From Macrostomum lignano (Eukaryota), in assembly GCA_002269645.1 (NCBI GenBank), contig NIVC01003906.1, positions 6,331 through 70,330 of the forward strand: a stretch of DNA of 64,000 bases, given 5' to 3'. The notes under the pieces are model-generated. The model was not told the DNA's origin, made no database searches, and was given only the letters and a program-made list of their open reading frames with translations. The translations under genes were made by a program, and so were the position numbers. Of this stretch, positions 5,925 through 62,784 are shown one piece after another (position 1 is the first letter of the stretch; every line of letters begins with the position of its first letter).

Positions 5925-8902
5925 TCACTTCTCAGCGGACTCCTGAAATTATAACAAAATATTTACAGTCAGTCATCATTAGATTGAGCACTTCTACTTA
6001 AAAAATGTTCCATGAATGTAGAATTGAAAATTCAGTTTTTTTATGAGTGCTCTCTGAGAGTCAGTGGTCCTAGTACGATTCCGCAAGTTAAAAAAGTTCT
6101 GCTTTAGTTGACAAGTATTATTGTACAAGTAATACAATACTACATGCAAACTATAGTATATAATAAAATGTTCTAGTATGTATTAGTGCACCTTTACTAT
6201 AATATCAATACTCCTGCACTATAGTATTAGTACACATGTACTTTAGTATCAGTGCACCTGTACTATACTATCAGTACAACTGCACTATAGTATTATTGGA
6301 CCTAGACATCCCACTACAGTATTAGTACACCTGCAGTAAAATATTACTACATCTGTATTAAGCTACCCCTCCATTCCCCCTCCCTTACCGATTCTCCCTT
6401 TTCCTCGGCCGCCTGCTCGGGCACTTCTTCCACCTGAAATTAGACGATTAATTAATCAATTTATCCATTCACTTACGGGTGTACTTTTATTTAGCTATTG
6501 TGGCATAACATTTAATACCTTCTCAAGCTCTTGTTTCTCCTCAGCTTCATCCTCCGCGTCACCGATGCCCGTCCCAGCCTCTTCTTCTTCATCAACCTGC
6601 CCGTTTCTGAGCGCCGCCTCGCGCTCCTCTTTGCGTCGGTCGCGCAGTTTCTTCTCGTTTTCGATTGCGGCGAAAAAGTCCGCCTCCGCCTTCGCAACCA
6701 AATCCTCATGCTCCTCGTCTCTGTGCTCCTCCTCTTCCTCCTGGTGTTGGGATGAAGATATTAGTGGATTAAGAGAGAAAGTTCATCTGACCCAATGATC
6801 ATGTCACTATGTGGATCAGCTGACCCACTGGTCCTGAATCTATCCCACTCTATGGGTCAGCTGACCCACTAGTCCCGAATCTATCCCATTCTATGGGTCA
6901 GCTGACCCACTGATCCTGGATCTATCCCACTCTATGAGTCAGCTGACCCACTGATCCTGGATCTATCCCACTCTATGGGTCAGCTGACCCACTGATCCTG
7001 GATCTATCCCACTCTATGGGTCAGCTGACCCACTGATCCTGGATCTATCCCACTCTATGGGTCAGCTGACCCACTGATCATGAATCTATCCCACTCTATG
7101 AGTCAGCTGACCCACTGATCCTGGATCTATATCACTCTATGGGTCAGCTGACCCACTGATCCCGAATCTATCCCACTCTATGGGTCAGCTGACCCACTGA
7201 TCCTGGATCTATCCCACTCTATGGGTCAGCTGACCCACTGATCATGAATCTATCCCACTCTATGAGTCAGCTGACCCACTGATCCTGGATCTATATCACT
7301 CTATGGGTCAGCTGACCCACTGATCCCGAATCTATCCCACTCTATGGGTCAGCTGACCCACTGATCCTGGATCTATCCCACTCTATGGGTCAGCTGACCC
7401 ACTGATCCCGAATCTATCCCACTCTATGGGTCAGCTGACCCACTGATCCTGGATCTATCCCACTCTATGGGTCAGCTGACCAGATTTGCATTCTTCTAAT
7501 ATCAGTGAAACTGTATAAAATCTTCCGAATTTCTCACTCTAGTCTGGCAGCTCATGTGATCGAAATAAATTATTTAAAGGAAGCTAAAATTGCTTCTTTC
7601 GTGTTCTGATCCAGTAAACAGGTGAATTTGATGAATAGAAGGTTTTTCCGTGAAAATTTGTGTACAAAAATGCGGAAACTTTGATCTACAACAAACGGCA
7701 GCCCAAGTCTTATGCTCCTAGAAGCAGAAGATTACCGGCGGAGCGGGCGTTTTGGCACTTCGAGTGCTCAATGGTGTCTCATTGCCACTGACGCTCTGCT
7801 AGATGAAGTTGGTTTGACCATTTTATAATTCGATTTTTTTAACTTGTTAGTCTGTTATTAAACAATCCAAAATAAGTTACAAAACATGTAAACTGTACGT
7901 GTGTCGTGGCTAAGAATTTGTTCAATGCTAAGGGGATTAAGCATTCGAAATTATGTCTAACATTTCAATATAGATTTTGCATAAACATATACGAGATTTC
8001 AGCTGACTCCCTTGAATTTCTTGCAAAGGGGTCAGTTGACCCTCCTGATTTTCACGAGTGAGGGGTCAAATGGCGGGGTCAATTTTCACGGGAGGTCAAC
8101 TGACTCCCTGATTTTTTTCTTCGTGAAAGGGGGCCAACTGACTCCCTGATTCTATCAAAGAAGGATTCAACTGACTCCCAGATCTTATTTTCTCGAGAAG
8201 GAGGTCAACTGACTCCCTGATTTTCTTGGGGGGTCAACTGACTCCCTGATTTTCTTGGGGGGGGGGTCAACTCACTCACTGGTTTTTTGCGGGGAGGTCA
8301 ACTAACCCATTGTTTCCCGCCAACACAGGGGTCAATTGACCATACTGAATTGCTCGCGGGGTGGTCAGCTGACGTATCAATCTCCCCAAAAAACTCACCG
8401 CTCCACCTTTCTTCTCCTTCAGCTTCATCTCGCGATGCCGCGACTCCAGAATCTTCTCTCGTCGAGTTTCCCGTTCGAAAATCGCGTTCACCAGATTTCG
8501 CTCGTTCCGGTTTTGCGCGTAGAAGCCTTCGGACAGCTCCACGATGGTGGCGACTCCCGACTGGCTGCCGCAGGCCATGAGCCGGCCGTGCTCCTGCAGG
8601 CGGAGGCACTGCAGCGGCTCGTCGCAAACCTGCACAGTCAGTGTCGGGTCGTTCTGCTTGAACAGCAGGTCCCACACGTCCAGGGTGCCATCAGTTTTCG
8701 ATGTGAAGAACACCCCGGGTCGGGCGGTGGACCAGCAACCGTCCGTGAGGCCGCACTGGTGATACTTGGTCCACATGATGGCGTTCTCTTTGATGTCCTC
8801 CGACCAGATGCGGGCTGTCCAGTCGCCAACTGACATGAAAACCTGCGGATGGGGGGGGGGCGGGGTTGTCTATCTCAAGCACTCGATGTCTGTGGGCAAA
8901 AT

Positions 8903-8934
<32 letters not shown>

Positions 8935-8937
8935 CTA

Positions 8938-9002
<65 letters not shown>

Positions 9003-9021
9003 GGCAGACAGACAGACAGGC

Positions 9022-9084
<63 letters not shown>

Positions 9085-9086
9085 TG

Positions 9087-9124
<38 letters not shown>

Positions 9125-10262
9125 ATAAGCTCACCTTAGGAAACTGCGGGTTCCTCTGCAGGGCGTACACCGGCCCAATGTGTCCGGGATACACAGCGAC
9201 AATTTTATCGGCGTCAGTTTTGCCTTTCCTGTTGCAAGCGAAAATCGCGCCCTGCTCCGAGCCGGCCATGAACTTAGTGGGAATTGTCGGCTCGTATTCG
9301 AGCGAGTAAGCGCCGTGAGCGCAGGCCAGGTCCTGCTTCTTTGTCGGATCCAGGCACAGCCGTTCGATCGGTTCGGACAGCTTTCGAGTGTCCCACCAGA
9401 GCACTTGACCGTCCGTGGACACTGAGAAGCACTCTGTACCGGTTTTGCTCTGGTTCCAAATCACTTTCCATACCGGATCGCGATGTCCGTTGGCCACCTC
9501 TGTTGACTCAACAGGTTGCGAACCTTTCCTTGAGTCCCAGTAGGCAATTTGACCGTTGTAGCAACCTCCAACCAGGACGTGCGAGTCCTTGGGATTGTAC
9601 TCCAGGCAAACAAGTGGCGACACCGGCTTAAGAGCGAGCTCCGGCTTGTTGGGATTGATGACGTCCCAGAGGTAGGACTCGGTGGACGTGTCCTTCGGCG
9701 CCCGCTGGAAATCCGTGTTGCAGTAGGCGATGGCCAACTTTGTTGGCCCATCCGGGTACCAGCTGATGTGCGCCACGCCGCGGTCTTTGCAAGGATCTCT
9801 GAACACGTTGATGGTCTTGGCGGAGGGCGGCTCTTCCGTTGCTTGAATCTCAATATCGCTGAAGTAGTCCTGGTAGATGTCTATAGCGTTGTTCTGCCTG
9901 ATGCAGTGCTCCATCTGGTTGCCGAGGTTCTGCACCGTACTGACGTACATTTCGTCTTTTTCGACCTTCTTACGAAACCGGATCACCTGTTCTACCTCCT
10001 GCGGATTGACGTCCTTCGGCCAGCCGCCCTCGGCGTGATTGACGCCATGGGAGTCAGTCTCAAATCGCTCGGTGTTCACATCGTGCTCGCTCATCTCCTG
10101 GACTACTTGGATGGCCCTGTCGACGGGGTCGCGCTCGAGGAACTCCTTCAGCGCTTCCGGGTTGGGCGCGATGTCTACCAGCAGCTCCGAGGGTCGGTCG
10201 CTGAAGATGCATTGGCGACCGAAATCGGCGCGCTTTTTCGTGTATACGTACTGGATCTCCAT
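5925..10262 (-). CDS. DNAI2: Axonemal outer-arm dynein intermediate chain 2 (WD40), 5 coding exons: 10262-9135, 8842-8399, 6740-6519, 6433-6389, 5942-5925; 618 aa
   Basis: N-terminus [23 protein letters not shown]...[14 protein letters not shown]...[11 protein letters not shown] matches the DNAI2 family as recalled; WD40 repeats; all introns GT-AG and phase 0; TGA at 5925-5927. Confidence 0.95.
6810..7481. repeat. 41-bp minisatellite (~16 copies), each unit carrying the 16-bp palindrome TGGGTCAGCTGACCCA, in DNAI2 intron
   Basis: Unit GATCCTGGATCTATCCCACTCTATGGGTCAGCTGACCCACT; period measured 6911 to 6952. Confidence 0.95.
8020..8375. repeat. Degenerate repeats GGTCAACTGACTCCC related to the 41-bp array core
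   Basis: About 8 irregularly spaced copies of GGGTCA(A/G)(C/T)TGAC. Confidence 0.7.
8905..9122. repeat. (GACA)n microsatellite filling a DNAI2 intron
   Basis: Direct observation. Confidence 0.98.
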
Positions 10263-10268
10263 GGCAAC
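10255..10268. promoter_or_regulatory. Candidate RFX X-box ATCTCCATGGCAAC centred on the DNAI2 start codon
   Basis: Fits the X-box consensus RTHNYYWTRRNRAC at all 14 positions in a ciliary gene, but overlaps a Kozak GCCATGG context. Confidence 0.35.
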
Positions 10269-11729
10269 CACCGGGTAGCGCGGTTCTTCGCTGAAATCGG
10301 CAAAGGACCAATATATTGTAATGTAATTCACGAAATAAATATATTTCATGAATATCTTATAGCAAATATTTATTTGAACTATATCACTTAATAGCTATTT
10401 TATAATTATCACAGTGATTATTATAAGTATTTTAGAGATAGTTCATCTACAGACACTGAAGATCTCTTCTTGTATCAAAACTGAAGAACCATCAGGCATA
10501 TGTGCATGTAACCAGTTCTCTTCAAAAGTTTGAGGTTGTGTGCTAAAAAAGAATCTCACAAAGAAGAAGTTATCGTTCCTGTAAAATGTATTGTAGTATC
10601 TACCAATTTCATTTAAAAATAAAATCGACATTCATTAGTTCAAATCATATATATTATTACATAAAAATCTTAAAGCAACAGAACAGAATGTCCACACTCC
10701 TTAATTCAATTATATTTTTTATATGATGATATTAGAGATTGGAGATTAATATTTAGTGAATAAGTTTCAGAAATAACTTTATATATTTCTGCTTCGGAGA
10801 AGATACACATATCGGAGAAAATGCAAAACGTAATACAGATAGTATTATAGTATTGATAATCATCACAATAAAATTTTCAGCTATTTTGAATCCTTAATTA
10901 TTTCCTTGATATCTATCCATTGCTATGGCTGTGCTACCTGCCAAGAAAAAGCTTAAAACTAAAAAAGTCATATATGAATATATAAAATAGTACGAGTATA
11001 TAGTTCCCGTCCCGTTATTTTGCTACTTTAGTTGAATATAGAACCCATTCAAGAATTCCATCTTATAAAATCGAAGTCATTTTTGTACTCAGAAATCGAT
11101 CGCATCCGGTCGCAATGCAACTAACAACCAAATAAAATATTTTGTTTAATAAAGAAAACAAAAAGAAAACTAACGAAAGTCGCAATTTATGCTTTTACTT
11201 TTTTTGCAGCATTGTAACTCGCCGACTGTTTTTTGGCTTTGTTTTACTCGTAATATACTAAAGCCCGTTGAATATGTTTCAAACTACGAAGTCATACACA
11301 GCTCAGCTCAGCGCAAGTAAGTCGTTCAAAATTTTAAAAGTTTCAGCTTTCATCCAATAAAAAGTTTTCTTTCATCCATCTTTTCACTGCAAAGCCACTT
11401 TGAAATTTTTTTTCCATGCTTTGAAATATCAAATAGTATTTTTTACTAATAAACGAATACTCAAATGACGTTTATGCTTAAAGAGCGTATTAAATCGATA
11501 TTAATATTATTATTATTATTATTAAATCGAATTACATTCAATGGGGTAGTCACTTTCAGAATCTTGTGGGATATCGGTTTTGAGACCATGAAATCACTTG
11601 TAAAGGATAAATACTCAGAAAATACTCGATTTATGAAACACAGCTTGGACACAATTCTGATCGAATTGACGACTCTCTGTATTTGCAGAAAATAAATTTA
11701 AGTTGAATTTAAATTGAATGAAGCGCGCA

Positions 11730-14924: not shown

Positions 14925-15570
14925 AAGTGCAGACATGAGTGAATGCAGAAATGAGTGAATGCAGAGATGAGTGAATGCAGAGATGAGTGAATGCAGAGAT
15001 GAGTGAATGCAGAGATGAGTAAATGCAGAGATGAGTGAATGCAGATATGAGTGAATGCAGAGATGAGTGAATGCAGAGATGAGTGAATGCAGAGATGAGT
15101 GAATGCAGAGATGAGTGAATGCAGAGATGAGTGAATGCAGAGATTAGTGAATTCAATGCAGGGATAATTGAATTCAAAGATGAGTGAATCCAAAGTAGAG
15201 ATTAGTGAATTCCAAGCATAGATGAGTGAATCCAATGCAAAGATGAGTGAATCTCAAGCAGAGATGAGTGAATCCAATGCAAAGATGAGTGAATCTCAAG
15301 CAGAGATGAGTGAATCCAATGCAGGGATGAGTGAATCTCAAGAAGAGATGAGTGAATCCAATGCAGGGATGAGTGAATCCCATGCATAGATGCGTGAATC
15401 CCATGCAAAGATGAGTGAATCCCATGCAGATATGAGTGAATCCCATGCAGATATGAGTGAATCCCATGCAAAGATGAGTGAATCCAATGCAAAGATGAGT
15501 GAATCCCATGAAAATATGAGTGAATCCCAGGCAAAGATGAGTGAATCCCATGCAAAGATGAGTGAACGCA
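14925..15570. repeat. Compound minisatellite: 16-bp (GATGAGTGAATGCAGA) switching to 21-bp (GATGAGTGAATCCCATGCAAA)
   Basis: Shared GATGAGTGAAT core; period changes near 15165. Confidence 0.95.
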
Positions 15571-16225: not shown

Positions 16226-19160
16226 TCAATTGCTAGCATTACTGTTTGCTTGCAGCAAGGTACGGCATCGGTTCTGCAGTTTGTTAATCCTCTCAAATAC
16301 TTTAACAGCTGGGCCCAGTTTCAGGCCGAGACCGGCGAGCACGTCCATTCGCTTCATCAGCATCAGAGAGGCGCCGTCTATCTCTTGATCGACAAATGCC
16401 TGAGCAGCCAGAGGGAAGCCTTCGGATAGGAGCCAGGATTTCACTTGGGCGATGGTCCACTTGCTGGCGTCGAATGGATTCGGGTCGTCTAGAAATACAG
16501 GCGACTTCCTGCTGGAGTTGGGAGAGACAAATCAAGCGAATGAAATTAGCTTTTTACCATAGAAGTTTGAATTAGAAAACTAGATTCAATGGTCTATCTA
16601 GTTGGAAGCTTTTACCATAGACACTAGCTAGTTAAGGTGGTTTTACCAGGCATTGGCTAGCTGGGATGGAGTTTTACCATAAACACTAGCTGACTAACGT
16701 CTAGCTGGGGTGGGATTTTACCATAAACACTAGCTGACTAACGCCTAGCTGGGGTGGAGTTTTACCATAAACACTAGCTGACTAACGTCTAGCTGGGGTG
16801 GGATTTTACCATAAACACTAGCTGACTAAAGTCTAGCTGGGGTGGGATTTTACCATAAACACTAGCTGACTAACGTCTAGCTGGGGTGGGATTTTACCAT
16901 AAACACTAGCTGACAAACGTCTAGCTGGGGTGGGATTTTACCATAGACACTGGCTGATTAACGTCTAGCTGGGGTGGGGTTTTACCATAGACCACTGGCT
17001 AGTTAAGATGATTTTACCATAGACTGGCTAGTTGGGTGGAATTTTACCATAGACACTAACTGACTAACGTCTAGCTGGGGTGGGGTTTTACCATAGACAC
17101 TGGCTGACAAATCAGAGTCTGCAATATAGACTGTTGCATAAATTTATATTTAGGTCCACGGTTTCTACCATGCGCGTTACTCACCTATTCATTGATCCGT
17201 CATCCTCGATCTTCTGACAGGCTGAGCAAATCCACTTGGCCTCGCTAGCCGGCTTCTCCGGTATCTTCGGCCGGTGGCAGCTGACGTGGTAGCCCTTGTC
17301 GCAGGCGTCACAGATAAGCATCAGCTCCGCGTCGCCTGGATCGAGGCAGACGCAGCAGGTCTTGCACTCGGAGCACTGCCAAGGCGACTGGCGGGCTCGA
17401 GAGGCCAGCTCAACTGAGTAGAGCATGCAGCTAGGATGGGCCCGGTGGCTGCAGTCGCGGCAGGTTAGCAACTGCTCAGGGACGCCCATTCGATTAGCTC
17501 GGCCAGAGGACAAGCAAAAATCGCAGAGTTCATCGTCAGACTGCTGCTGATTAAGCTCTTGCTCAATGTCCTGCTCAGAGTCTTCATGATGTTGCTGCTG
17601 CTGCTGCTGCTGCTGGGAACGCTCTTCCAGCGAAGCAGCAGATGCTTTGGATTGTTTTCGAGTTTTCTCTTTGTTGTGCTTTGACTTGGTCGTAGCCGGC
17701 GATTCACTTGGTTGACTTTGGCGTCGCTCCTTCTGCTCGGTTGGATTTGGCGATCCGGCGGTCGCCGGCTTCTCAGCGACTACGGCGGAAGCGGCGGCTA
17801 CTGCTGGGGATGCTGAGTCCCTGGCAACGCCTTTGACTCGCGAGATGACCACGGTTGGAATTGGTGGTAGGGCCTGCTGCGGTTGCTTAGTGACAGACGA
17901 AGGCTGCGATGTCGGAGAGTGCTCAGCAGACTGAGCCGCTGGCGTTGCCGTAGTGTCTGCCACAGAGACAGACGTGATGCAGTAAGCAGGTGGCGCAGTT
18001 TCACTATTAGAGGAGCAATTACTTGAGCTGGAACTGGCGGTGGAGGCTGGCTGCCGCTGCTGCTGCTGAGGCAAGCAATGGCCAACTGACAAGTCCAGCG
18101 GTTCGCTCAGGTCCGACTGAGCTGGCTCGCTCGGTCTCGGCCGCTTAGCCTGGGGCGGGTGAAGCTGCTGCGACTGCTGCTGCTTGTTGCTGTTGCTGCT
18201 GCTCTCCTTGCGCTTTTTGAGCGCCTCCTTATCGCGACGCTTCGATCCGTCCGGGTCGAGAGTGTACCGGCCGGTGGAGACGCGGCACAGTCCGCCAGTG
18301 GACGCCTCGCGTTCGAGCGCCATCTCCAGAGTTTCGCCCTGCAGAGGCTCCGCGCCTGGCGCCGAATCCTCTTCTTCAGACGTCGCCGACGGCAGGCAGC
18401 GCAGACGATCGGCCACGTCCTGAACGGTGAAGCCGGAGGCGAGCGCGTCGGGCTGATCGCTGGCCAGGCTGCCGACTGCGGCCAACAGGCGACGACTGGT
18501 GGCGCTGCTGTTCAACACGCTGCTGATGAGGGAGCCGCGGCGCCATTTTGAAGCATTCCGGTAGGACACGGAGCCTTTGTACTCGACCTTCAGCACCGAG
18601 CCGTCGTCAACTAGACGCTCGAGCAGCTGTACAATGGCCTCCCGTTGGAGACCGTGATGCCGCGTCACCATCGAACAGATCCGATCAATATCTGGCCGGG
18701 CCTTCCGCTCGCGCAGTTTGTCAATGATGGTCAGGATCATTGTGCGGATCGGCTCATCGCCGAGAGCAGCCGCTGCAGCCGCGGCGGCTGCTGCTGCTGC
18801 GGCGGCTTTTTCCGCGGAACGCTGCTGCTGCTGCTGCTGCTGCTGCGACGGTGGCGGAGAAGACATCGTTGTGGACGTGACAATGGCGGCTGCGTGTTCG
18901 GGCAGCTGCTGAGCGGCGGCCGGATTATCCGGACGCTGTTGAACTAGCCGATCAACCGAGTGTCCGATGGAGGACTTGACCGGTGCCGGTGCATGACAGA
19001 TGTTGTTGTTCTCGCCTAGGCTGGCACTGGTATTATTATTAATGGCAGCCTTTGCACCGCCGTGGTGATGATGGAGCTGATGGTGATAGCTAGCCACCAC
19101 CTGCTGCGACGACAGGAAGCCAGGCGGGATGGCCGTCTGCACTGGCAGAGCGCGGGCCAT
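16226..19160 (-). CDS. SAMD1-like: SAMD1-like chromatin reader: winged helix 1 + winged helix 2 (H15-like) + double PHD finger + C-terminal SAM; exons 19160-17185 and 16511 (or 16508, NAGNAG)-16226
   Basis: WH 'MILTIIDKLRERKARPDIDRICSMVTRHHG...VLKVEYKGSVSYRNA' resembles SAMD1 WH; DPF 'CDFC...CRDC..RAHPSC...WQCSECKTCCVC...ICDACDKGYH..C...KWICSAC'; SAM 'WTIAQVKSW...GFP...AFVDQEIDGASLMLMKRMDVLAGLGLKLGPAVKVF'; phase-2 intron AG|GTGAGT ... CTCCAG|. Confidence 0.9.
16610..17105. repeat. 44-bp minisatellite in the SAMD1-like intron
   Basis: Unit TTTTACCATAAACACTAGCTGACTAACGTCTAGCTGGGGTGGGA; period 16681 to 16725. Confidence 0.93.
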
Positions 19161-20083: not shown

Positions 20084-23000
20084 CCATAGTGCAGAAGGAC
20101 GGGTGTACGACGGAAATTTCCGTCGTACATTGAGGTTGGTTGTCGTACATGTCGTACATCGTTCATTTTTGCAAGGGCTCTTTGTCGTACATGTCGTACC
20201 GTCGTTGGCCACACTGTCACTGTCGTACATCTCTGACTAGAAAGCTATATGCATAGGCATTTAAAAATACAATTTCGTTTTCATAATTAAATTAAATTTA
20301 TTCAAAGTTCTTTTTACGAGGCACAAATAAAATATAATCTTGGCATACTTAATAATAATTTTTTATTATGTGGCACCAAATTTCACATTTTTATATTCAA
20401 GGCCACACAAATGTGCATCCGTTGTTTTAATCTTAACCTTGTTTATTTCTTTTTTGAAATGCGTATCGTTGTATCGTGTTACTGGGAATTGAATTGTGAA
20501 TGTGAATTAATTCATAATCATCTGATCTTGTAATTCTCGTCCTCCGGTCAGTCTCGTCTCTCGTGATCGTGATGTGATCTAAGATAAGATCTGATCTGAC
20601 TAATGTCTTTTGTCTTATCCCTTATAACTTTTACTTTTCTATAATCTATGGCTATGCACTCTGCACTGCACTAGCACTATATACTATACTACAAGCTACA
20701 ACTAAAAGTAACTTTTAAGTTTTCTTAATTTGTTGCAAAACTTAAACTAGCAATTTGTAATTTTTCAACTTTGACAAGTAAATTTATTAGTAGTTAGTAC
20801 GAGTAACAAGTTGAGTAATTAATTAAGTTGAGACTGTTGAGTTGAGTTGCATGTTGCATTGTTGCAGTTGACTCATTGACTTTGACTGTTGACAAATGAC
20901 AAGGTCAACTGTCAAGTGACACTTGTGACAGTTTGTTGTTTGAGACTTTGAGTTAGTGAAAGTGACTAGTGACTGACTGACTGGTCTGTCTGACTGACTG
21001 ACTCGTGTCTCGTGTCTGTGTCTGTCTGGACATCTGGTGATTCTTTCAAGTTTATTTTTTAAACATTTTATCACTTTTACCTTCATAAATTAGTTCTAGA
21101 ACTTCTAGTGTTCTGTTCTAATTCTAGTTCTTAACTTAACTTCTTGTTCTTAATCTTAGTTGCAAGTTTTTATTTTAAAAGTTCAAGTTGTCAGTTGTGT
21201 AATTTCACAATTTCAGTAATTGAGTTGACATTAGACAAGTTTATAAAATTATCTTATCACTTTCTTTTAATAATTAGTAATTAATTAATTAAATGCATTT
21301 TTTATTTGTCAAATTTGACTTTACTTGACAAGTTGAAGTTGACAGTTGAGTACTTGAGTATTGAGTAAAGACATAGTAATTAAGTTGACAGCTATGGCTT
21401 ATTGCTTGGCTTGAAACCAACAAATATTTCTTACGAAATAACAAGTAGAAGTAGCTAATAGCCATCTAGCCAAGAGACACCAAGTTTTGCTTCGTTTCAT
21501 GAAAGAAAAGAAGTGAATATATATAAATTAGGGCCTACTGCAAGTCTGCAACTAATTTGAGACAAAACTTCAGGTGCTTGGCAGCAACTTTAGCAAATAC
21601 AACTTCCAAGTTGACTTGACATTGACAAGTGTATAAATTTATCTTATTACCTTTACTTTTAGTCTTTTAGTAATTCTAAATTCATAGCAAATTTTGCTAT
21701 TGTATTGTATTGTAAGTTGACTAGATTGAGTAATTGAGTTGTATAAAATTATGCAATTGATTATATTTGGTAGAGTTGAGTAGAACATTTGGTAGAGCTA
21801 GATTGTAGAATGGTACAGTATAGTATATGAAATTATTTTATAAAAAAAACAAAATATATTGAAATGTGCATTAATTATATCCTATTACTAAATGTCTAAT
21901 CTTTATTTCCTAAATTTCTATAAGTATAATTATAATTATTTATTTAATTTTTGTAAACAAAACCATATTTTTATTCAACTGATAACTAGTTTGGTTTATG
22001 CTTACTTATTGATTAGATTTGGTCATAACTAATAATACTAAATTAAATGCTGATTGCCAAAAAAATTAACTTGTCTTTCAGCTAAATTCAGCTATTCAGC
22101 ATTTGCTTTTTGATTTATTGTGCCAAAATTAATCTCTATAATGTCTCGTAGCAGTAGCACATCAAGTTCTGGCTCTGAAGAAAATCAGTCTGAGACAGAG
22201 ACACCACTAGCTGCAGCTTTGCAAGCTAGTATCCAGGACCAGGCTGACCAGGCAGAGCCAGAGGCAGTAGTAGAGAAGGCGAAGGCTGCTGAGTGTGCTT
22301 GGGCCCATATGCCAATCATGCAACAGGCACAGCGGCAACGCCAACAGCAACAGGCTAATGTGCAAGTACAAGCAAAATCAAAGCGTCCACTGAGTTTGTC
22401 TCATGCAGCGTCTTCATCTGCACAAACTGAAGAGCCACCAACTAAGAAGCCTCGCGGAACTGTGTGTGACCCACATTACTGTGTGGATTGCCTTCAGCGA
22501 GGGCTTCCACTGTCCAACTGCCGCATTTATCGAAACAATGGTAGTAGCAGAAAAACTCATCGGAGTCGCTGGCACAAAGAAGACCCAGCCAATAAGATTT
22601 TAACATATTGCAGACCTGACCATGCTGATGTTCGCGACCTAATTGCTGCCAGGCCTGCCAATGAGAATGAGAAGCAGGTAAAAAAACGCATCACAAAGGC
22701 CATGGTCAGCCATGAGGTGCTGGAGGTTGAAAGTGCCAGTGATGAAGAGTCACCTGAACGTCCTGAAGTTCCAATGACCACTGAGCCTGAGGCAGAGCAG
22801 CAGCAGTCTGAGGGACCAAAGACAAATCTGGTAGTAAACATTGAAGTACTGGAATCATCCGCCGTTGACCAAAGATCCAGCTCATTTGTTAGGCAGCTTG
22901 CTGATGCTTCACCTATCCTTCCCAGTCCTGCTGAGGCTGCATCTACAGCATCATCAAGCACGTCAGGTCGGGATCTTTTGGCAATTGTCACTGGGCTGGA

Positions 23001-26000
23001 AATTAAAATGGCGGAGGCAGCCCGACAACTTGCCCTACTTCCGATTATACTAAATGTTGTTCGGGACTTGGCGCTGTCACAGGCTACCTCCAGCTCAAAC
23101 TCTCGGGGACAAAACTTACCAAAAGTGCCGCCAATTGTGGCTAGCAACATGGCCGAGCTCCTGGAGAACGAGATGCTCGCCACAGCACCTTGCGGTGAGG
23201 ACACAATTTTATACTGTGTCCCGTGCTACAACGTTTTAATGGAAGGCACGGCCTTCTCGCCAAAGTTGACTGTTGCGGAGAGGCACAGCACTTTGTAAGT
23301 CCATTGTATGTACTTTTATCTAACAGGCAATAAGACAATCCAGTTGGCCTTTTCCATTTATTTATTATAAACTTTCATTTCTCTAACTTCTTATAGAAAC
23401 CCCAAGTCGATGGGCACGCTTGCACGAGGGCAGCTCATTACAAAGCTGGAAATGACTGAGATCCTTGCGTGTGGCGAGGCATTCTCCCGGCTTCGTTATA
23501 GGATAGTGAAACATCTCTCTGGTATCGAGGCTGTCGGCCATGTGAAAGCTATGAAGAAGTATGCGGACCGCAAGATTGAAGAGAAGCGCGTCTCAGGAAC
23601 TGTTCGGCGCCTTTTGCGTTGCTCTGTTGCCAATATCGAATCAGCGTCAGCTAGTAAGCACTATGAGACGTTCGTGAGCATGCTTTATCGGTCGGACGCT
23701 GAAGTTGGCCAGCGGGGCCACGGCCGGTATGTACCATATTATGTGGTTTGTATCTGTATGCCATTAGCTAAGCTATGGTTATTTTGTACGCTATTTGTTA
23801 ATTTACCACCCACTATGCATCCAACTAGGGAGTTTAACAAGGAGTTGTGGTCGTTGTTTGAGGTCACCGCTGACAAGTATACGGCTGAGTTCCTGCAGAC
23901 CCCACTGCCGTCCACCGGATGTCCTCCCTGCTACGCCATTGCTTGCGACAAAAGCACACCAGGTCGCATCACTAACCAAGCTGTTATGGTGTTGGCCAGG
24001 TAAGTAGGGAGGAAGAAGGAAAAGTAATGTACATTAGGAGTATCCGCCACTTAAATATTACTTTTACTACCTCCTTAAAACGGATAACCCCTAACAGGTG
24101 CGAGACTGGTGACGCCGTTGCTATCCCAGGTGGCGCCCCGGCCGTTTATTCCAAAGAGATGGACGGCAGCGGCCCCGTTCTGGTGCAGCGGCTTTTTCAA
24201 GGTCTGGCGAACTTTGATTTGCCCATTGATCGTCTTGTGGGCGTCATTGCCGACGGGCAATATCAAACTGCGCCTTTTAAAACGGCAATATTTGAGAAGC
24301 TGAAGGAGGCCGGAGCCGACTATGAGATCCCAATTAACTGGGACCCGGCCCACTTTATAAACCTGGCCGTGACTAACGTGCGCGATAGTGACGACGGAGA
24401 GGCGTTGCAGGATTTTATTGACAGGGCAAACCTGTTTCCGCATCTTTTTGGCCACGGGCGTGGCCGTTCGGCTTTGGAAGTAAGTATGCAACCTGAATGT
24501 CTAACTGAATAGTTTACCGAGGGTTTTAGATATACGTTTGCTATAAAACTACTCCAAATTCTTTGTTTGTAAAAAAACAGATTGCTTCCGAGGACCATGC
24601 CGGAGCAATTTCATCATTTGCCTCGCAGCGCTTTACCAGTTCAGCCATGAACCAATGGCAGACCATCTTTCGCTGCTACGGCGATCTGCATGCCGCATTT
24701 CGAGCCGAGAAACCACGAGTCAGAGATAACGACCCACAGCCGTACATAATGTTCGGATTTGATTTTGTGTGCGACTTGTTGGGCTACCTGGATCTCTTTG
24801 CGCCAATCAAGTAAGTTGATTTATATGCCTTGTGGGTAGTAAAATTACTATGGGATCAACTTTTTGATTACCTACTTACTCCAAACACATAACACTTGCA
24901 CAGAGCTCTTATGGAGATTGCGCAGAATCTTCAGCTGCCCCACTGGAAAGTGTCTACCTTATGGCCATTGGTAGCTGAGTTCCTCCATGTCCATGCAGAG
25001 CAGTTTCGTAGTGAGGACTACCCCACGCTGCATGAGCACATCGACAATCTGCACGTTGGTGGCACATTTGATGGCGTGACTCTGCTGGACGGCTGGCTCA
25101 AAGTAAAAAAGCCGGTTGCTGGCTCTGCCTCTGACCAGGATCAGTGGCGCGCTCGAGACATGGAGGTAAGCTTGTGCAATCATTATATTATGTACTCTGC
25201 CAAAGTTACCATATTCTCCTTTGTGCTTCATTATTCAGCTCCATCCTTCTTCCTCCTTCCTCAGGACATTGCACGTGATACACAGAAGCTTGCCGGGGCA
25301 CTTCACCGCAGCTTCGTTGCTCGCATTCAACGCTGCTGCGACCCGAGCACCTCTGATTGTGCCTCCTTCGATGCAGCTGCCATCATCCGTGCCATTGCAT
25401 GCAGGGACCCTGAAGTTGCAGCAGAAGAGTTTGCAGACCAGTGCGCTCCCGCCTTTAAGCGGCTTGTGACCGAGGCAGTCAAGCATAAGCACCTGGCTCA
25501 TCTGAAAGTTCCCATGGCCCGAAGGTGAGCTCCTTCACAATCAAAACTATAAATGCACTGGTACTATAACTAGTGTGAGGCTGGAAATCACATATTTCAA
25601 GACCACTTTGCTACAGAAAAATGTAACGAAATCGAATTGTATTTAATTTTATTTTTTGTCCACTAAACTTAGGTATGCTGCGAACTTTGTGGACACTATA
25701 CGCCACGTCATTTTCACGGGTGAAGGCCGCAGTAGCTGGCTGGTGCCTTCCATCAACGGGCCACTGACGGATTTAAAAGTAGCAGCACCCACTTTGGCAC
25801 GTCAGTTATTGCTGCATCTATCGGGTTCGACAGCAGGTGGTGAATTTTCATCTGTTGTGGTGGACGAAGCAGCAGTTTATGCGTCTTTCTATGCCGACCC
25901 AGACGTTTTCCAGCGAGCCGGCCCTGCAACATGTGCACTACTTGATTTTGCACTACACCGAGGTGGCACTGGTGAGTTGCAAATTCCAGTTGCTATCTAC

Positions 26001-26652
26001 AAATTAACTAATGTCACCTTGGGCAAGTCAGTCAGATTTGATCAGAATTTCATCTACATATTTTTCCGCCTTTTTCTTCCAGAAGCGATTGTCGAGAGCT
26101 TCTACTCGACTATGCGGTCGCAACAGCAACAGGGAGGCCAAACCAACGACACCCTTCAGCTTCGCGCTAAGTTAGCTTGGTTGCTACCACCCATGGGCGG
26201 CGATGCATGCGAAGAATTTCTCGACGACTCTGCGAAACTTTTTTTTAAAGGCGACAAAAGCCGTGGGATTCGTCCACATTGGAGTCCGTTTTTTGCTGCC
26301 AAAACTAAGGACGCCATCGGCAAGGTGCTGCAGAGGCGCGCAGCAGCTGTTTCCCGTGTGCCATTCATCGGCCGTCGGAAGCAGAAGCCCAAAGACGGCG
26401 ACAATAATGCCAATTGATAAATTCATTTAATTGAATCATTCATAATTAATATTACTTCAATTACTTGTAAACTTGTTATTACCACTTACAACTTATTATT
26501 ACTCTTTGTCTGGGTCGGGAGTATGTGGGTTTCTGCATTGTAGTTTGTCGTACAAAAAAAAATTACTTAGTTCACTTGTGTCGTACTGTCGTACAGCAGG
26601 CTAAAACTGAAATTTGCCTTCCGTCGTACACAGAAATCCTTCTGCACCATGG
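20084..26652 (+). mobile_element. Complete autonomous hAT-like DNA transposon, 6569 bp
   Basis: TIRs CCATAGTGCAGAAGGA (20084-20099) and TCCTTCTGCACCATGG (26637-26652), 15/16 match; 8-bp TSD AAGAGAGC at 20076-20083 and 26653-26660; subterminal GTCGTAC motif clusters at both ends. Confidence 0.93.
22141..26417 (+). CDS. hAT-like DDE transposase, 9 exons, 1140 aa: 22141-23294, 23397-23726, 23829-23999, 24098-24479, 24581-24810, 24904-25165, 25265-25524, 25673-25971, 26083-26417
   Basis: All 8 introns GT-AG and phase-compatible (total 3423 nt). TTF-like Zn finger 'LYCVPC...KHLSGIEAVGHVKA'; putative catalytic D (CDKST), D (ADGQY), E (GGTEAIVESFYS); 'WDPAHFINLAV'; 'SQRF'. Confidence 0.88.
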
Positions 26653-36313: not shown

Positions 36314-41399
<5,086 letters not shown>

Positions 41400-54415: not shown

Positions 54416-62422
<8,007 letters not shown>

Positions 62423-62784
62423 CTGAAAATAAGCGTGTACAAAATCGGTAAAGTACTCGCGGGCCGGTTGCAATAAAACATGTGCCAGAAAAGTGATTCG
62501 AAATCATCAATTACCAATCGGATTGACAGCAGTATCGTCAAAGTTTGATGCTTTTCGTCCTGAAGTGTTTTGCAATTAAAATATTTAGCACCTCTGTTAG
62601 CTACGTATAAAGTTATTCTAAGCTAGCATTTGAAACGATGTAATCTAAGGATTGAGACACTTCATCAAGTTTCACTTCAAGACATCAGGCTGTCTATAAC
62701 TAGTTTCAGGCCCTCAGGGTTGTCGCAACGGATGGAAGGATAGTTTCGCTTTAGAAATTTTGAACAAAAATTCAAGTCTTATTG

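Follow-up and report, generated by a model that had tools for sequence, protein, structure and literature searches.

Within a 64,000-nt stretch of the Macrostomum lignano genome (contig NIVC01003906.1, positions 6,331 to 70,330; hereafter the window), a two-exon gene on the minus strand encodes a 753-aa protein that joins two winged helices (WH1 and WH2), a double PHD finger (DPF) and a C-terminal SAM domain. Comparison with other animal proteins makes it very probable that this gene is a member of the SAMD1/SAMD13/Lint-O family, and the protein probably keeps the full ancestral architecture of that family. As for what it does, we lean, somewhat beyond an even chance, toward a non-catalytic multivalent adaptor that would tether L(3)mbt-type repressors to CpG-rich promoters. 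Family membership and this CpG-tethering mechanism, taken jointly, form a reading that we consider likely. An earlier annotation of the same DNA (the original prediction) had proposed a hybrid of SAMD1 and the KAT6 acetyltransferases, possibly an ancestral or lineage-specific link between the two families.

The spliced coding sequence is 2262 nt long and remains in frame across the single intron. Exon 1 opens with the ATG at 19160 and ends at 17185, reading AAT AG/GTGAGT, and a polypyrimidine tract followed by CAG (...tctctcccaactccag/C) leads into exon 2 at 16511. Both exons were recovered at 100% identity by tblastn. The 17185/16511 junction is the sole canonical in-frame junction that we see, and the original prediction had placed it at exactly these positions. 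Two relatives, P0001 of M. lignano and the locus L002, carry the DPF and the SAM together, which supports the join between exon 1 and the SAM exon. Within the intron, Tandem Repeats Finder delimits the repeat at 16657-16989 (period 44, 7.6 copies, 94% matches), and degenerate 30-32-nt repeat copies lie beside it at 16972-17057.

The first winged helix is of the SAMD1 type. It matches Pfam SAMD1_WH (PF21524) at aa 141-202 with 95.5 bits against a cut-off of 24.5 (E=2.1e-27), bearing out the SAMD1-type winged helix with an RKARPD motif of the original prediction, and it is 54-58% identical to WH1 of SAMD1 (Atherin) and SAMD13. Among PDB sequences it matches the SAMD1 winged helix-DNA complex (6lui) at E=1.7e-18 and KAT6A WH1 at E=2.4e-12. 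For aa 130-345, an AlphaFold2 (AF2) model based on 50 homologues contains two winged helices at a pLDDT (predicted local distance difference test) of 85.7, and its WH1 superposes on 6lui in Foldseek with a TM-score of 0.91 and a root mean square deviation of 0.7 Å. SAMD1 reads unmethylated CpG through R45 and K46 in the major groove and Y87 and K88 in the minor groove, with additional backbone contacts (PMC8115922). When the CpG contact set of SAMD1 (R43, R45, K46, R48, R56, Y87, K88, S92, R94) was scored, eight of the nine residues proved identical in the window protein, namely R150, R152, K153, R155, Y194, K195, S199 and R201.

The SAM domain likewise points to SAMD1. It stays below the Pfam cut-off (19 bits), with SAM_1 and SAM_2 just under theirs. 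Among PDB sequences it matches the SAMD1 SAM (6luk) at E=3.6e-16, against 2.5e-8 for PHC3, the next family, and 8e-8 for L3MBTL3; the SAMD1/SAMD13-type SAM named in the original prediction was correctly identified. The leucines of the SAMD1 mid-loop (ML) and end-helix (EH) interfaces are conserved, with L495/L509/L513 of SAMD1 corresponding to L710/L724/V728 here. Scored against the wider set of homologues, the window SAM gives a median of 70.5 bits with SAMD1 and 70.9 bits with other family members, and the window WH1 gives 78.6 bits with SAMD1, 70.7 bits with other family members and 47 bits with KAT6.

We next asked how widely the four-domain arrangement occurs. The full 753-aa query returned 2 matches, its low-complexity words swamping the search, and the homologue search was run with the four domains concatenated as query, followed by an exhaustive HMMER search. 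Family representatives are the heads of clusters at 50% identity, many of them without names. At least 109 of them carry WH1, DPF and SAM in that order. The named carriers include a coral (Montipora), trematodes, a cestode, free-living flatworms, many molluscs, the annelid Owenia, the brachiopod Lingula, the nemertean Tubulanus, echinoderms and hemichordates and, among arthropods, a scorpion, a copepod and many insects. A further 21 representatives have WH1 and SAM without a DPF, and every named one is a vertebrate SAMD1 or SAMD13. On these sequences, WH1-WH2-DPF-SAM is the standard non-vertebrate form from Cnidaria to Ambulacraria.

This distribution bears directly on whether the gene could be a flatworm-specific hybrid, in which the N-terminal module of KAT6 was fused to a SAMD1 SAM by exon shuffling or by replacement of MYST. 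KAT6 proteins are the other known case of the order WH1-WH2-DPF, the DPF finds its best PDB match in KAT6A, and WH2 aligns to KAT6 WH2. Yet the same architecture extends from coral to hemichordates and into parasitic flatworms and therefore predates flatworms by a wide margin, and WH1 is SAMD1-like and separates from KAT6 WH1 in the tree. The taxonomic distribution of WH1-WH2-DPF-SAM refutes such an origin, which we regard as very unlikely. The proteome-wide architecture comparison that the original prediction had called for thus removes its lineage-specific option, and its own caveat, that novelty would fall if this were the standard invertebrate architecture, applies. What survives of the proposed link is its ancestral side: an ancestral connection between SAMD1 and the KAT6-like cassette is probable.

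The second winged helix is recognizable chiefly at the level of the family. In the AF2 model its topology is H-(S)-H-H-S-S, and a WH2-only model returned generic winged-helix matches in Foldseek, all at E>0.2, with no H1/H5 among them. An alignment of family WH2 sequences matches the KAT6 WH2 regions in hhalign with a probability of 94.4% (E=8.8e-8), and a family WH2 hidden Markov model (HMM) finds KAT6 WH2 at the expected place. Against PDB sequences the family profile matches the H15 domain of HP1BP3 (2.1e-4), KAT6B WH2 (8e4v, 4.3e-3) and H1.0 (0.03), and Pfam Linker_histone (PF00538) matches 15 of 32 family members, with a best E of 7.3e-6. Homology of WH2 to KAT6 WH2/H15 appears good at the family-profile level, and at that level only. 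The H15-like winged helix of the original prediction accordingly stands as a winged helix in the model, its H15 character being visible only through family profiles.

The DPF has Pfam PHD matches at aa 544-599 and 602-648 and retains all 16 zinc ligands. In phmmer searches of PDB sequences it matches KAT6A (5b78) at 1.5e-26, KAT6B at 2e-23, DPF3 at 3.4e-23, DPF2 at 1e-22 and PHF10 at 3e-21, so that the predicted double PHD finger is secure. D618, the equivalent of the MORF D289 that contacts H3 A1/R2, is kept, and by analogy we expect the window DPF to bind the H3 tail. Reading of acyl-lysine is another matter. The MORF residues compared for the K14-acyl channel were S217, F218, L235, S242, S243, G244, W264, C266 and I267; F548, L565, W594 and C596 are the identical positions in the window protein, and D547, H572, R573, A574 and S597 are altered. 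The CDFC motif and Arg573 of the window protein do resemble what we take to be the K14ac pocket of DPF3 (DPF3b D263/F264/R289). Since only 4 of the 9 channel residues are identical, acyl-lysine reading by this DPF looks doubtful, and the description of the protein as a reader of H3 acylation becomes uncertain.

In the interval from WH2 to the DPF, a conserved basic motif, KRGRP(P/A)S-KRKRIKKTHGPDFE, is present in most members of the family; its RGRP core resembles an AT-hook, and insect members read FRVG(G/V)RRKRAKKVFDPSD...KKRGRP here. The linker of the window protein could not be aligned to those of its relatives and, in contrast to most of the family, shows no KRGRP/KRKRxKKTHGPDFE motif; the Macrostomum copies, including this one, have AKRPRPSEP only.

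The shared cassette raises the question of whether the locus is a KAT6 gene. KAT6A, KAT6B and Enok have WH1, an H15-like WH2 and a DPF in collinear order, and the window protein matches this cassette in order and domain types; WH1 falls in one Pfam family with its KAT6 counterpart, the DPFs share about 49% identity, and WH2 is homologous at the profile level. Relatives of the window protein are, moreover, named 'histone acetyltransferase KAT6B-like' or 'MYST3' in databases, as would be expected if MYST exons lay beyond the window or in an alternative isoform. Unlike the KAT6 proteins, however, the window protein is without MYST and the C-terminal Ser/Met-rich regions and ends in SAM, directly followed by a stop codon. 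No Pfam MYST match was found in the protein, and the best tblastn hit to MYST over the 64-kb window has E=0.11, to be judged against MYST domains that are 62-74% identical to one another. A MYST exon elsewhere in the window is ruled out, there being no MYST-like sequence in the 64 kb, and the absence of an acetyltransferase that the original prediction had noted holds. Across the family, none of the 109 WH1-DPF-SAM representatives carries the MYST motif, and the 8 representatives that bear it are true KAT6. We consider a KAT6 gene with distant or alternative MYST exons scarcely credible.

Neither can the DPF be assigned to one of its known neighbours on similarity alone. The DPFs of the d4/BAF45 proteins (DPF1-3) and PHF10 are nearly as similar to that of the window as the KAT6 one is, but those proteins are without WH1 and SAM. 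Conversely, no Pfam match at E<=1 was found in the window protein for the Requiem N-terminal domain, the C2H2 finger or the SAY domain. A neighbour-joining tree of DPFs does not resolve its depth (52% support for KAT6 plus other DPF proteins) and does not settle between KAT6 and d4/PHF10 affinity for the family DPF. Of the separate phylogenies that the original prediction had suggested, that of WH1 splits the family from KAT6, and that of the DPF does not place it with KAT6. Its 'complete KAT6 module' is therefore right about the order WH1-WH2-DPF and overstates the affinity to KAT6, WH1 being nearer SAMD1.

The relation to vertebrate SAMD1 and SAMD13 emerges from WH1 as well. In a neighbour-joining tree of this short domain, rooted on KAT6, vertebrate SAMD1/SAMD13 are nested in the family next to hemichordates, with KAT6 separate; a clade of 13 taxa, comprising two molluscs, two hemichordates and the vertebrates, has bootstrap support of 100, and the pairing of the window protein with M. 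lignano has 88. The vertebrate proteins differ in having no DPF (0 of the 21 WH-SAM representatives) and, in SAMD1, a degenerate WH2, of which the family HMM detects the C-terminal half as a remnant. The remnant accords with Pfam SAMD1_SHD ('SAMD1 small helical domain'), which matches 8 of 32 family WH2 segments. In place of the Pro/Ala-rich intrinsically disordered region that mammalian SAMD1 needs in order to polymerise (PMC11969672), the window protein carries its S/Q-rich linker. A shark SAMD13 isoform X2 (P0196, Stegostoma tigrinum, 479 aa) combines WH1 and SAM with a WH2 that is nearly complete (family HMM E=9e-14). Human SAMD13, described with a SAM and without a PHD domain (PMC9535798), may be a reduced form.

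On the insect side, beetle members of the family bear the RefSeq name 'L(3)mbt interactor in ovarian somatic cells' (Lint-O); these orthologues have the full WH1-WH2-DPF-SAM and match the window protein at E~1e-52. Like the window protein, Drosophila Lint-O (CG2662) has a pair of PHD fingers ahead of a C-terminal SAM, but its published description, PHD-PHD-SAM, mentions no winged helix (PMC9535798). Phlebotomine sand-fly members (P0067, P0160, P0253, P0255) begin directly at the basic motif, and family HMMs found neither WH1 nor WH2 in them, which fits the published description of Drosophila Lint-O. P0253 has two tandem SAM domains. A search with an alignment of insect members for D. melanogaster CG2662 returned mostly Lepidoptera and no Drosophila, and P0148, suspected as a fly protein, proved closest to Orthoptera and Blattodea. 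The Lint-O paper gives SAMD13 as a BLAST match (PMC9535798). A unification of SAMD1 with Lint-O is not stated in the literature searched, in which the papers mentioning Lint-O do not treat SAMD1.

The simplest reading of these patterns is one ancestral WH1-WH2-DPF-SAM protein, with the DPF lost in vertebrates and the winged helices in at least some Diptera. The WH1-WH2-DPF cassette in common with KAT6 points to an older common origin. We tentatively extend this, at rather less than even likelihood, to a single history in which SAMD1/SAMD13 (having lost the DPF and most of WH2) and dipteran Lint-O (having lost the winged helices) would be reciprocal reductions of an ancestral eumetazoan WH1-WH2-DPF-SAM protein, itself an ancient paralogue of KAT6, that the flatworm gene still represents. 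If this is true, early animals had a MYST-ended writer and a SAM-ended, L(3)mbt-recruiting adaptor at the same CpG/H3-tail sites, with opposite outputs.

The closest proteins to the window gene are a near-identical M. lignano pair, P0001 and P0003, with the same four domains and 68% identity over them. In laboratory M. lignano the orthologous genes are Mlig008857 and Mlig000786. In the P0001 gene an intron also sits between DPF and SAM. Coding exon number varies among the close relatives: an M. lignano gene (L001 8001-17560, NIVC01003246.1) has five coding exons and, unlike the window gene, adjoins Fumble and HlyIII; the window gene has two; and L002 (11166-11805, ENA ERZ25070786 ctg119913l) is uninterrupted from WH1 to SAM, with DPF and SAM about 150 nt apart. 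Given its different exon number and neighbours, the window gene may be a paralogue of the M. lignano gene. A short intron between DPF and SAM in L002 was considered and rejected, the coding sequence there being contiguous apart from a 1-nt frameshift within the SAM; either an assembly error or a pseudogene would account for the frameshift.

Such variation makes it reasonable to ask whether the window gene is a gene-model artefact, with the SAM exon belonging to another transcript, or a decaying, non-functional paralogue. Its two exons against five in M. lignano, its long low-complexity insertions and its 134-aa N-terminal extension would fit, as would the frameshifted SAM of L002 and the missing KRGRP/THGPDFE motif; the model comes from sequence alone, and the protein collection contains no exact match. 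Nevertheless, the four domains are intact and free of stops, with the zinc ligands complete and eight DNA contacts kept, the splice sites are canonical and in frame, DPF is followed by SAM in at least 109 representatives, and the M. lignano gene also has the DPF-SAM intron. We judge an artefact or a decaying copy improbable and return to a functional member of the SAMD1/SAMD13/Lint-O family.

For such a protein, studies of its relatives suggest a mechanism. SAMD1 binds L3MBTL3 through its SAM and represses (PMC8115922, PMC11969672), with L495 serving self-association and L509/L513 serving the L3MBTL3 SAM (PMC11969672). Drosophila Lint-O/CG2662 binds L(3)mbt by SAM-SAM contact and co-represses germline and piRNA (PIWI-interacting RNA) genes; both L(3)mbt binding and the repression of vasa and aub depend on its SAM (PMC9535798). 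In MORF, WH2 attaches to the nucleosome dyad and works together with WH1 (PMC9908889). By analogy with SAMD1, WH1 of the window protein would contact CpG DNA in two grooves: R152 and K153, at the end of helix 1, would enter the major groove at CpG, and the beta-hairpin with Y194 and K195 would enter the minor groove next to it. The H15-like WH2 could, like that of MORF, add non-specific contacts to DNA or the nucleosome. The DPF would engage the N-terminal tail of H3. The C-terminal SAM would self-associate head to tail and bind the SAM of L(3)mbt through its end-helix surface, so that L(3)mbt, and probably LSD1/CoREST-type partners, would be tethered and stabilised at CpG-rich promoters. The outcome would be silencing of target genes such as germline genes. 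From these analogies we infer CpG binding by WH1, SAM-L(3)mbt binding and repression for the window protein.

A protein of the same family might instead read active promoters in an activating or neutral way, independently of L(3)mbt, and might compete with KAT6 or scaffold the SAM proteins Sfmbt or Ph. CG2662 has also been recovered together with Sfmbt (PMC9451159), SAMD1 occupies active CpG islands marked by H3K4me3 (PMC8115922), and the EH residue L513 is a valine here. Against this, SAMD1 and Lint-O both repress together with L3MBTL3 or L(3)mbt, and the window SAM is much nearer that of SAMD1 than any other SAM. An activating or neutral reader seems to us unlikely, and the repressive adaptor remains our preferred mechanism.

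Several observations weigh against the family assignment or the mechanism built on it. The ninth DNA contact of SAMD1 is lost, R56 being replaced by S163 in WH1. WH2 is broken by a disordered acidic loop, a 19-aa insertion at aa 258-276, and taken alone it matches no Pfam family, Linker_histone PF00538 included. The MORF K14-acyl channel is identical at only four of the nine positions given above. The connection to Lint-O consists of the RefSeq names of beetle orthologues together with a matching architecture. In Drosophila Lint-O itself, mutation of eight PHD cysteines did not abolish repression (PMC9535798), which leaves a histone-reader role of the DPF unproven even in the fly. Finally, the gene model is drawn from DNA sequence alone, and an exact look-up of the exon-1 product gave no match in the protein collection. 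The start codon and 5' end are predicted: the frame upstream of the ATG at 19160 stays open as far as 19310, and a His/Gln/Ala-rich stretch precedes WH1, which starts at aa 135 here but at about aa 7-10 in most relatives. The N-terminus as modelled is uncertain.

Table 1. Parts of the gene and of its predicted protein, in positions of the window.
Feature	Positions	Strand	Residues and remarks
Coding exon 1	17185..19160	minus	aa 1-658 and two bases of codon 659; open reading frame and donor AG/GTGAGT read directly; N-terminal low-complexity region, WH1, WH2, disordered linker and DPF
WH1, SAMD1-type winged helix	18543..18758	minus	aa 135-206, includes RKARPD
WH2, second winged helix	18249..18512	minus	aa ~217-304
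Disordered linker, S/Q/A/P-rich	17541..18248	minus	aa 305-540; from composition
Double PHD finger	17211..17531	minus	aa 544-650; PHD1 546-599, PHD2 602-648
Intron	16512..17184	minus	673 nt, GT...AG, mostly 44-nt tandem repeat
Coding exon 2	16226..16511	minus	aa 659-753, stop TGA 16228-16226; SAM domain
SAM, SAMD1 type	16268..16462	minus	aa 676-740

The remainder of the window holds further genes and repeats. Just downstream of the 3' end of the gene, dense 16-, 21- and 84-nt tandem repeats (consensus TGCAGAGATGAGTGAA...) occupy 14928-15566 and yield spurious long open reading frames (ORFs) in several frames. At 8276-10349 on the minus strand lies a WD40 beta-propeller gene with weak WD40 Pfam matches only, which by its sequence looks like an axonemal dynein intermediate chain. 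Five consecutive long ORFs on the plus strand (22120-26417; 392, 197, 161, 210 and 253 aa) may be a single multi-exon gene or an unclassified mobile element; a Pfam scan of the 392-, 197-, 210- and 253-aa ORFs gave no match. An apparently intact non-LTR (long terminal repeat) retrotransposon spans 36314-41249 on the minus strand, with a 1003-aa ORF that matches RVT_1 (E=1.5e-30) and RNase H (E=1e-12), preceded by ORFs of 190 aa (39559-40131) and 372 aa (40131-41249) without Pfam match, the latter of which could be ORF1. Minus-strand exons at 58389-58877 and 61991-62473 encode a Cys-loop (nicotinic-type) ligand-gated ion channel (Neur_chan_LBD, Neur_chan_memb), and microsatellite-like CTGTCTGT runs lie in the adjoining intron.

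The annotation of the locus is hereby corrected to an adaptor of the SAMD1/Lint-O family, neither a histone acetyltransferase nor a one-off hybrid. Taken by itself, the locus is an unremarkable orthologue or paralogue in a widespread animal family, whose proteins are already in public databases and of which one member and the vertebrate derivatives are already characterised. Database names for these proteins are assigned automatically and vary: besides 'histone acetyltransferase KAT6B-like', 'MYST3', 'MYST4' and 'Atherin', they appear as 'PHD finger protein 10', 'KMT2D-like', KMT2C/D, PHF10, DPF2 or polyhomeotic-like. Dozens of RefSeq and UniProt entries (P0005-P0026, P0083, P0094 and others) bear KAT6B-like, MYST3 or MYST4 names, none with MYST, and are misnamed; those names are automatic transfers from shared N-terminal domains.

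For the family, these results mean that SAMD1, which has been called vertebrate-specific (PMC8115922), is the form, without the DPF, that an old animal family takes in vertebrates. The presence of Lint-O in the same family leads to the hypothesis that, in non-dipteran invertebrates, L(3)mbt complexes reach DNA via the CpG-binding WH1. Macrostomum is amenable to RNA interference and transgenesis, which makes it a suitable animal in which to ask whether the complete four-domain protein helps to silence germline or stem-cell genes.

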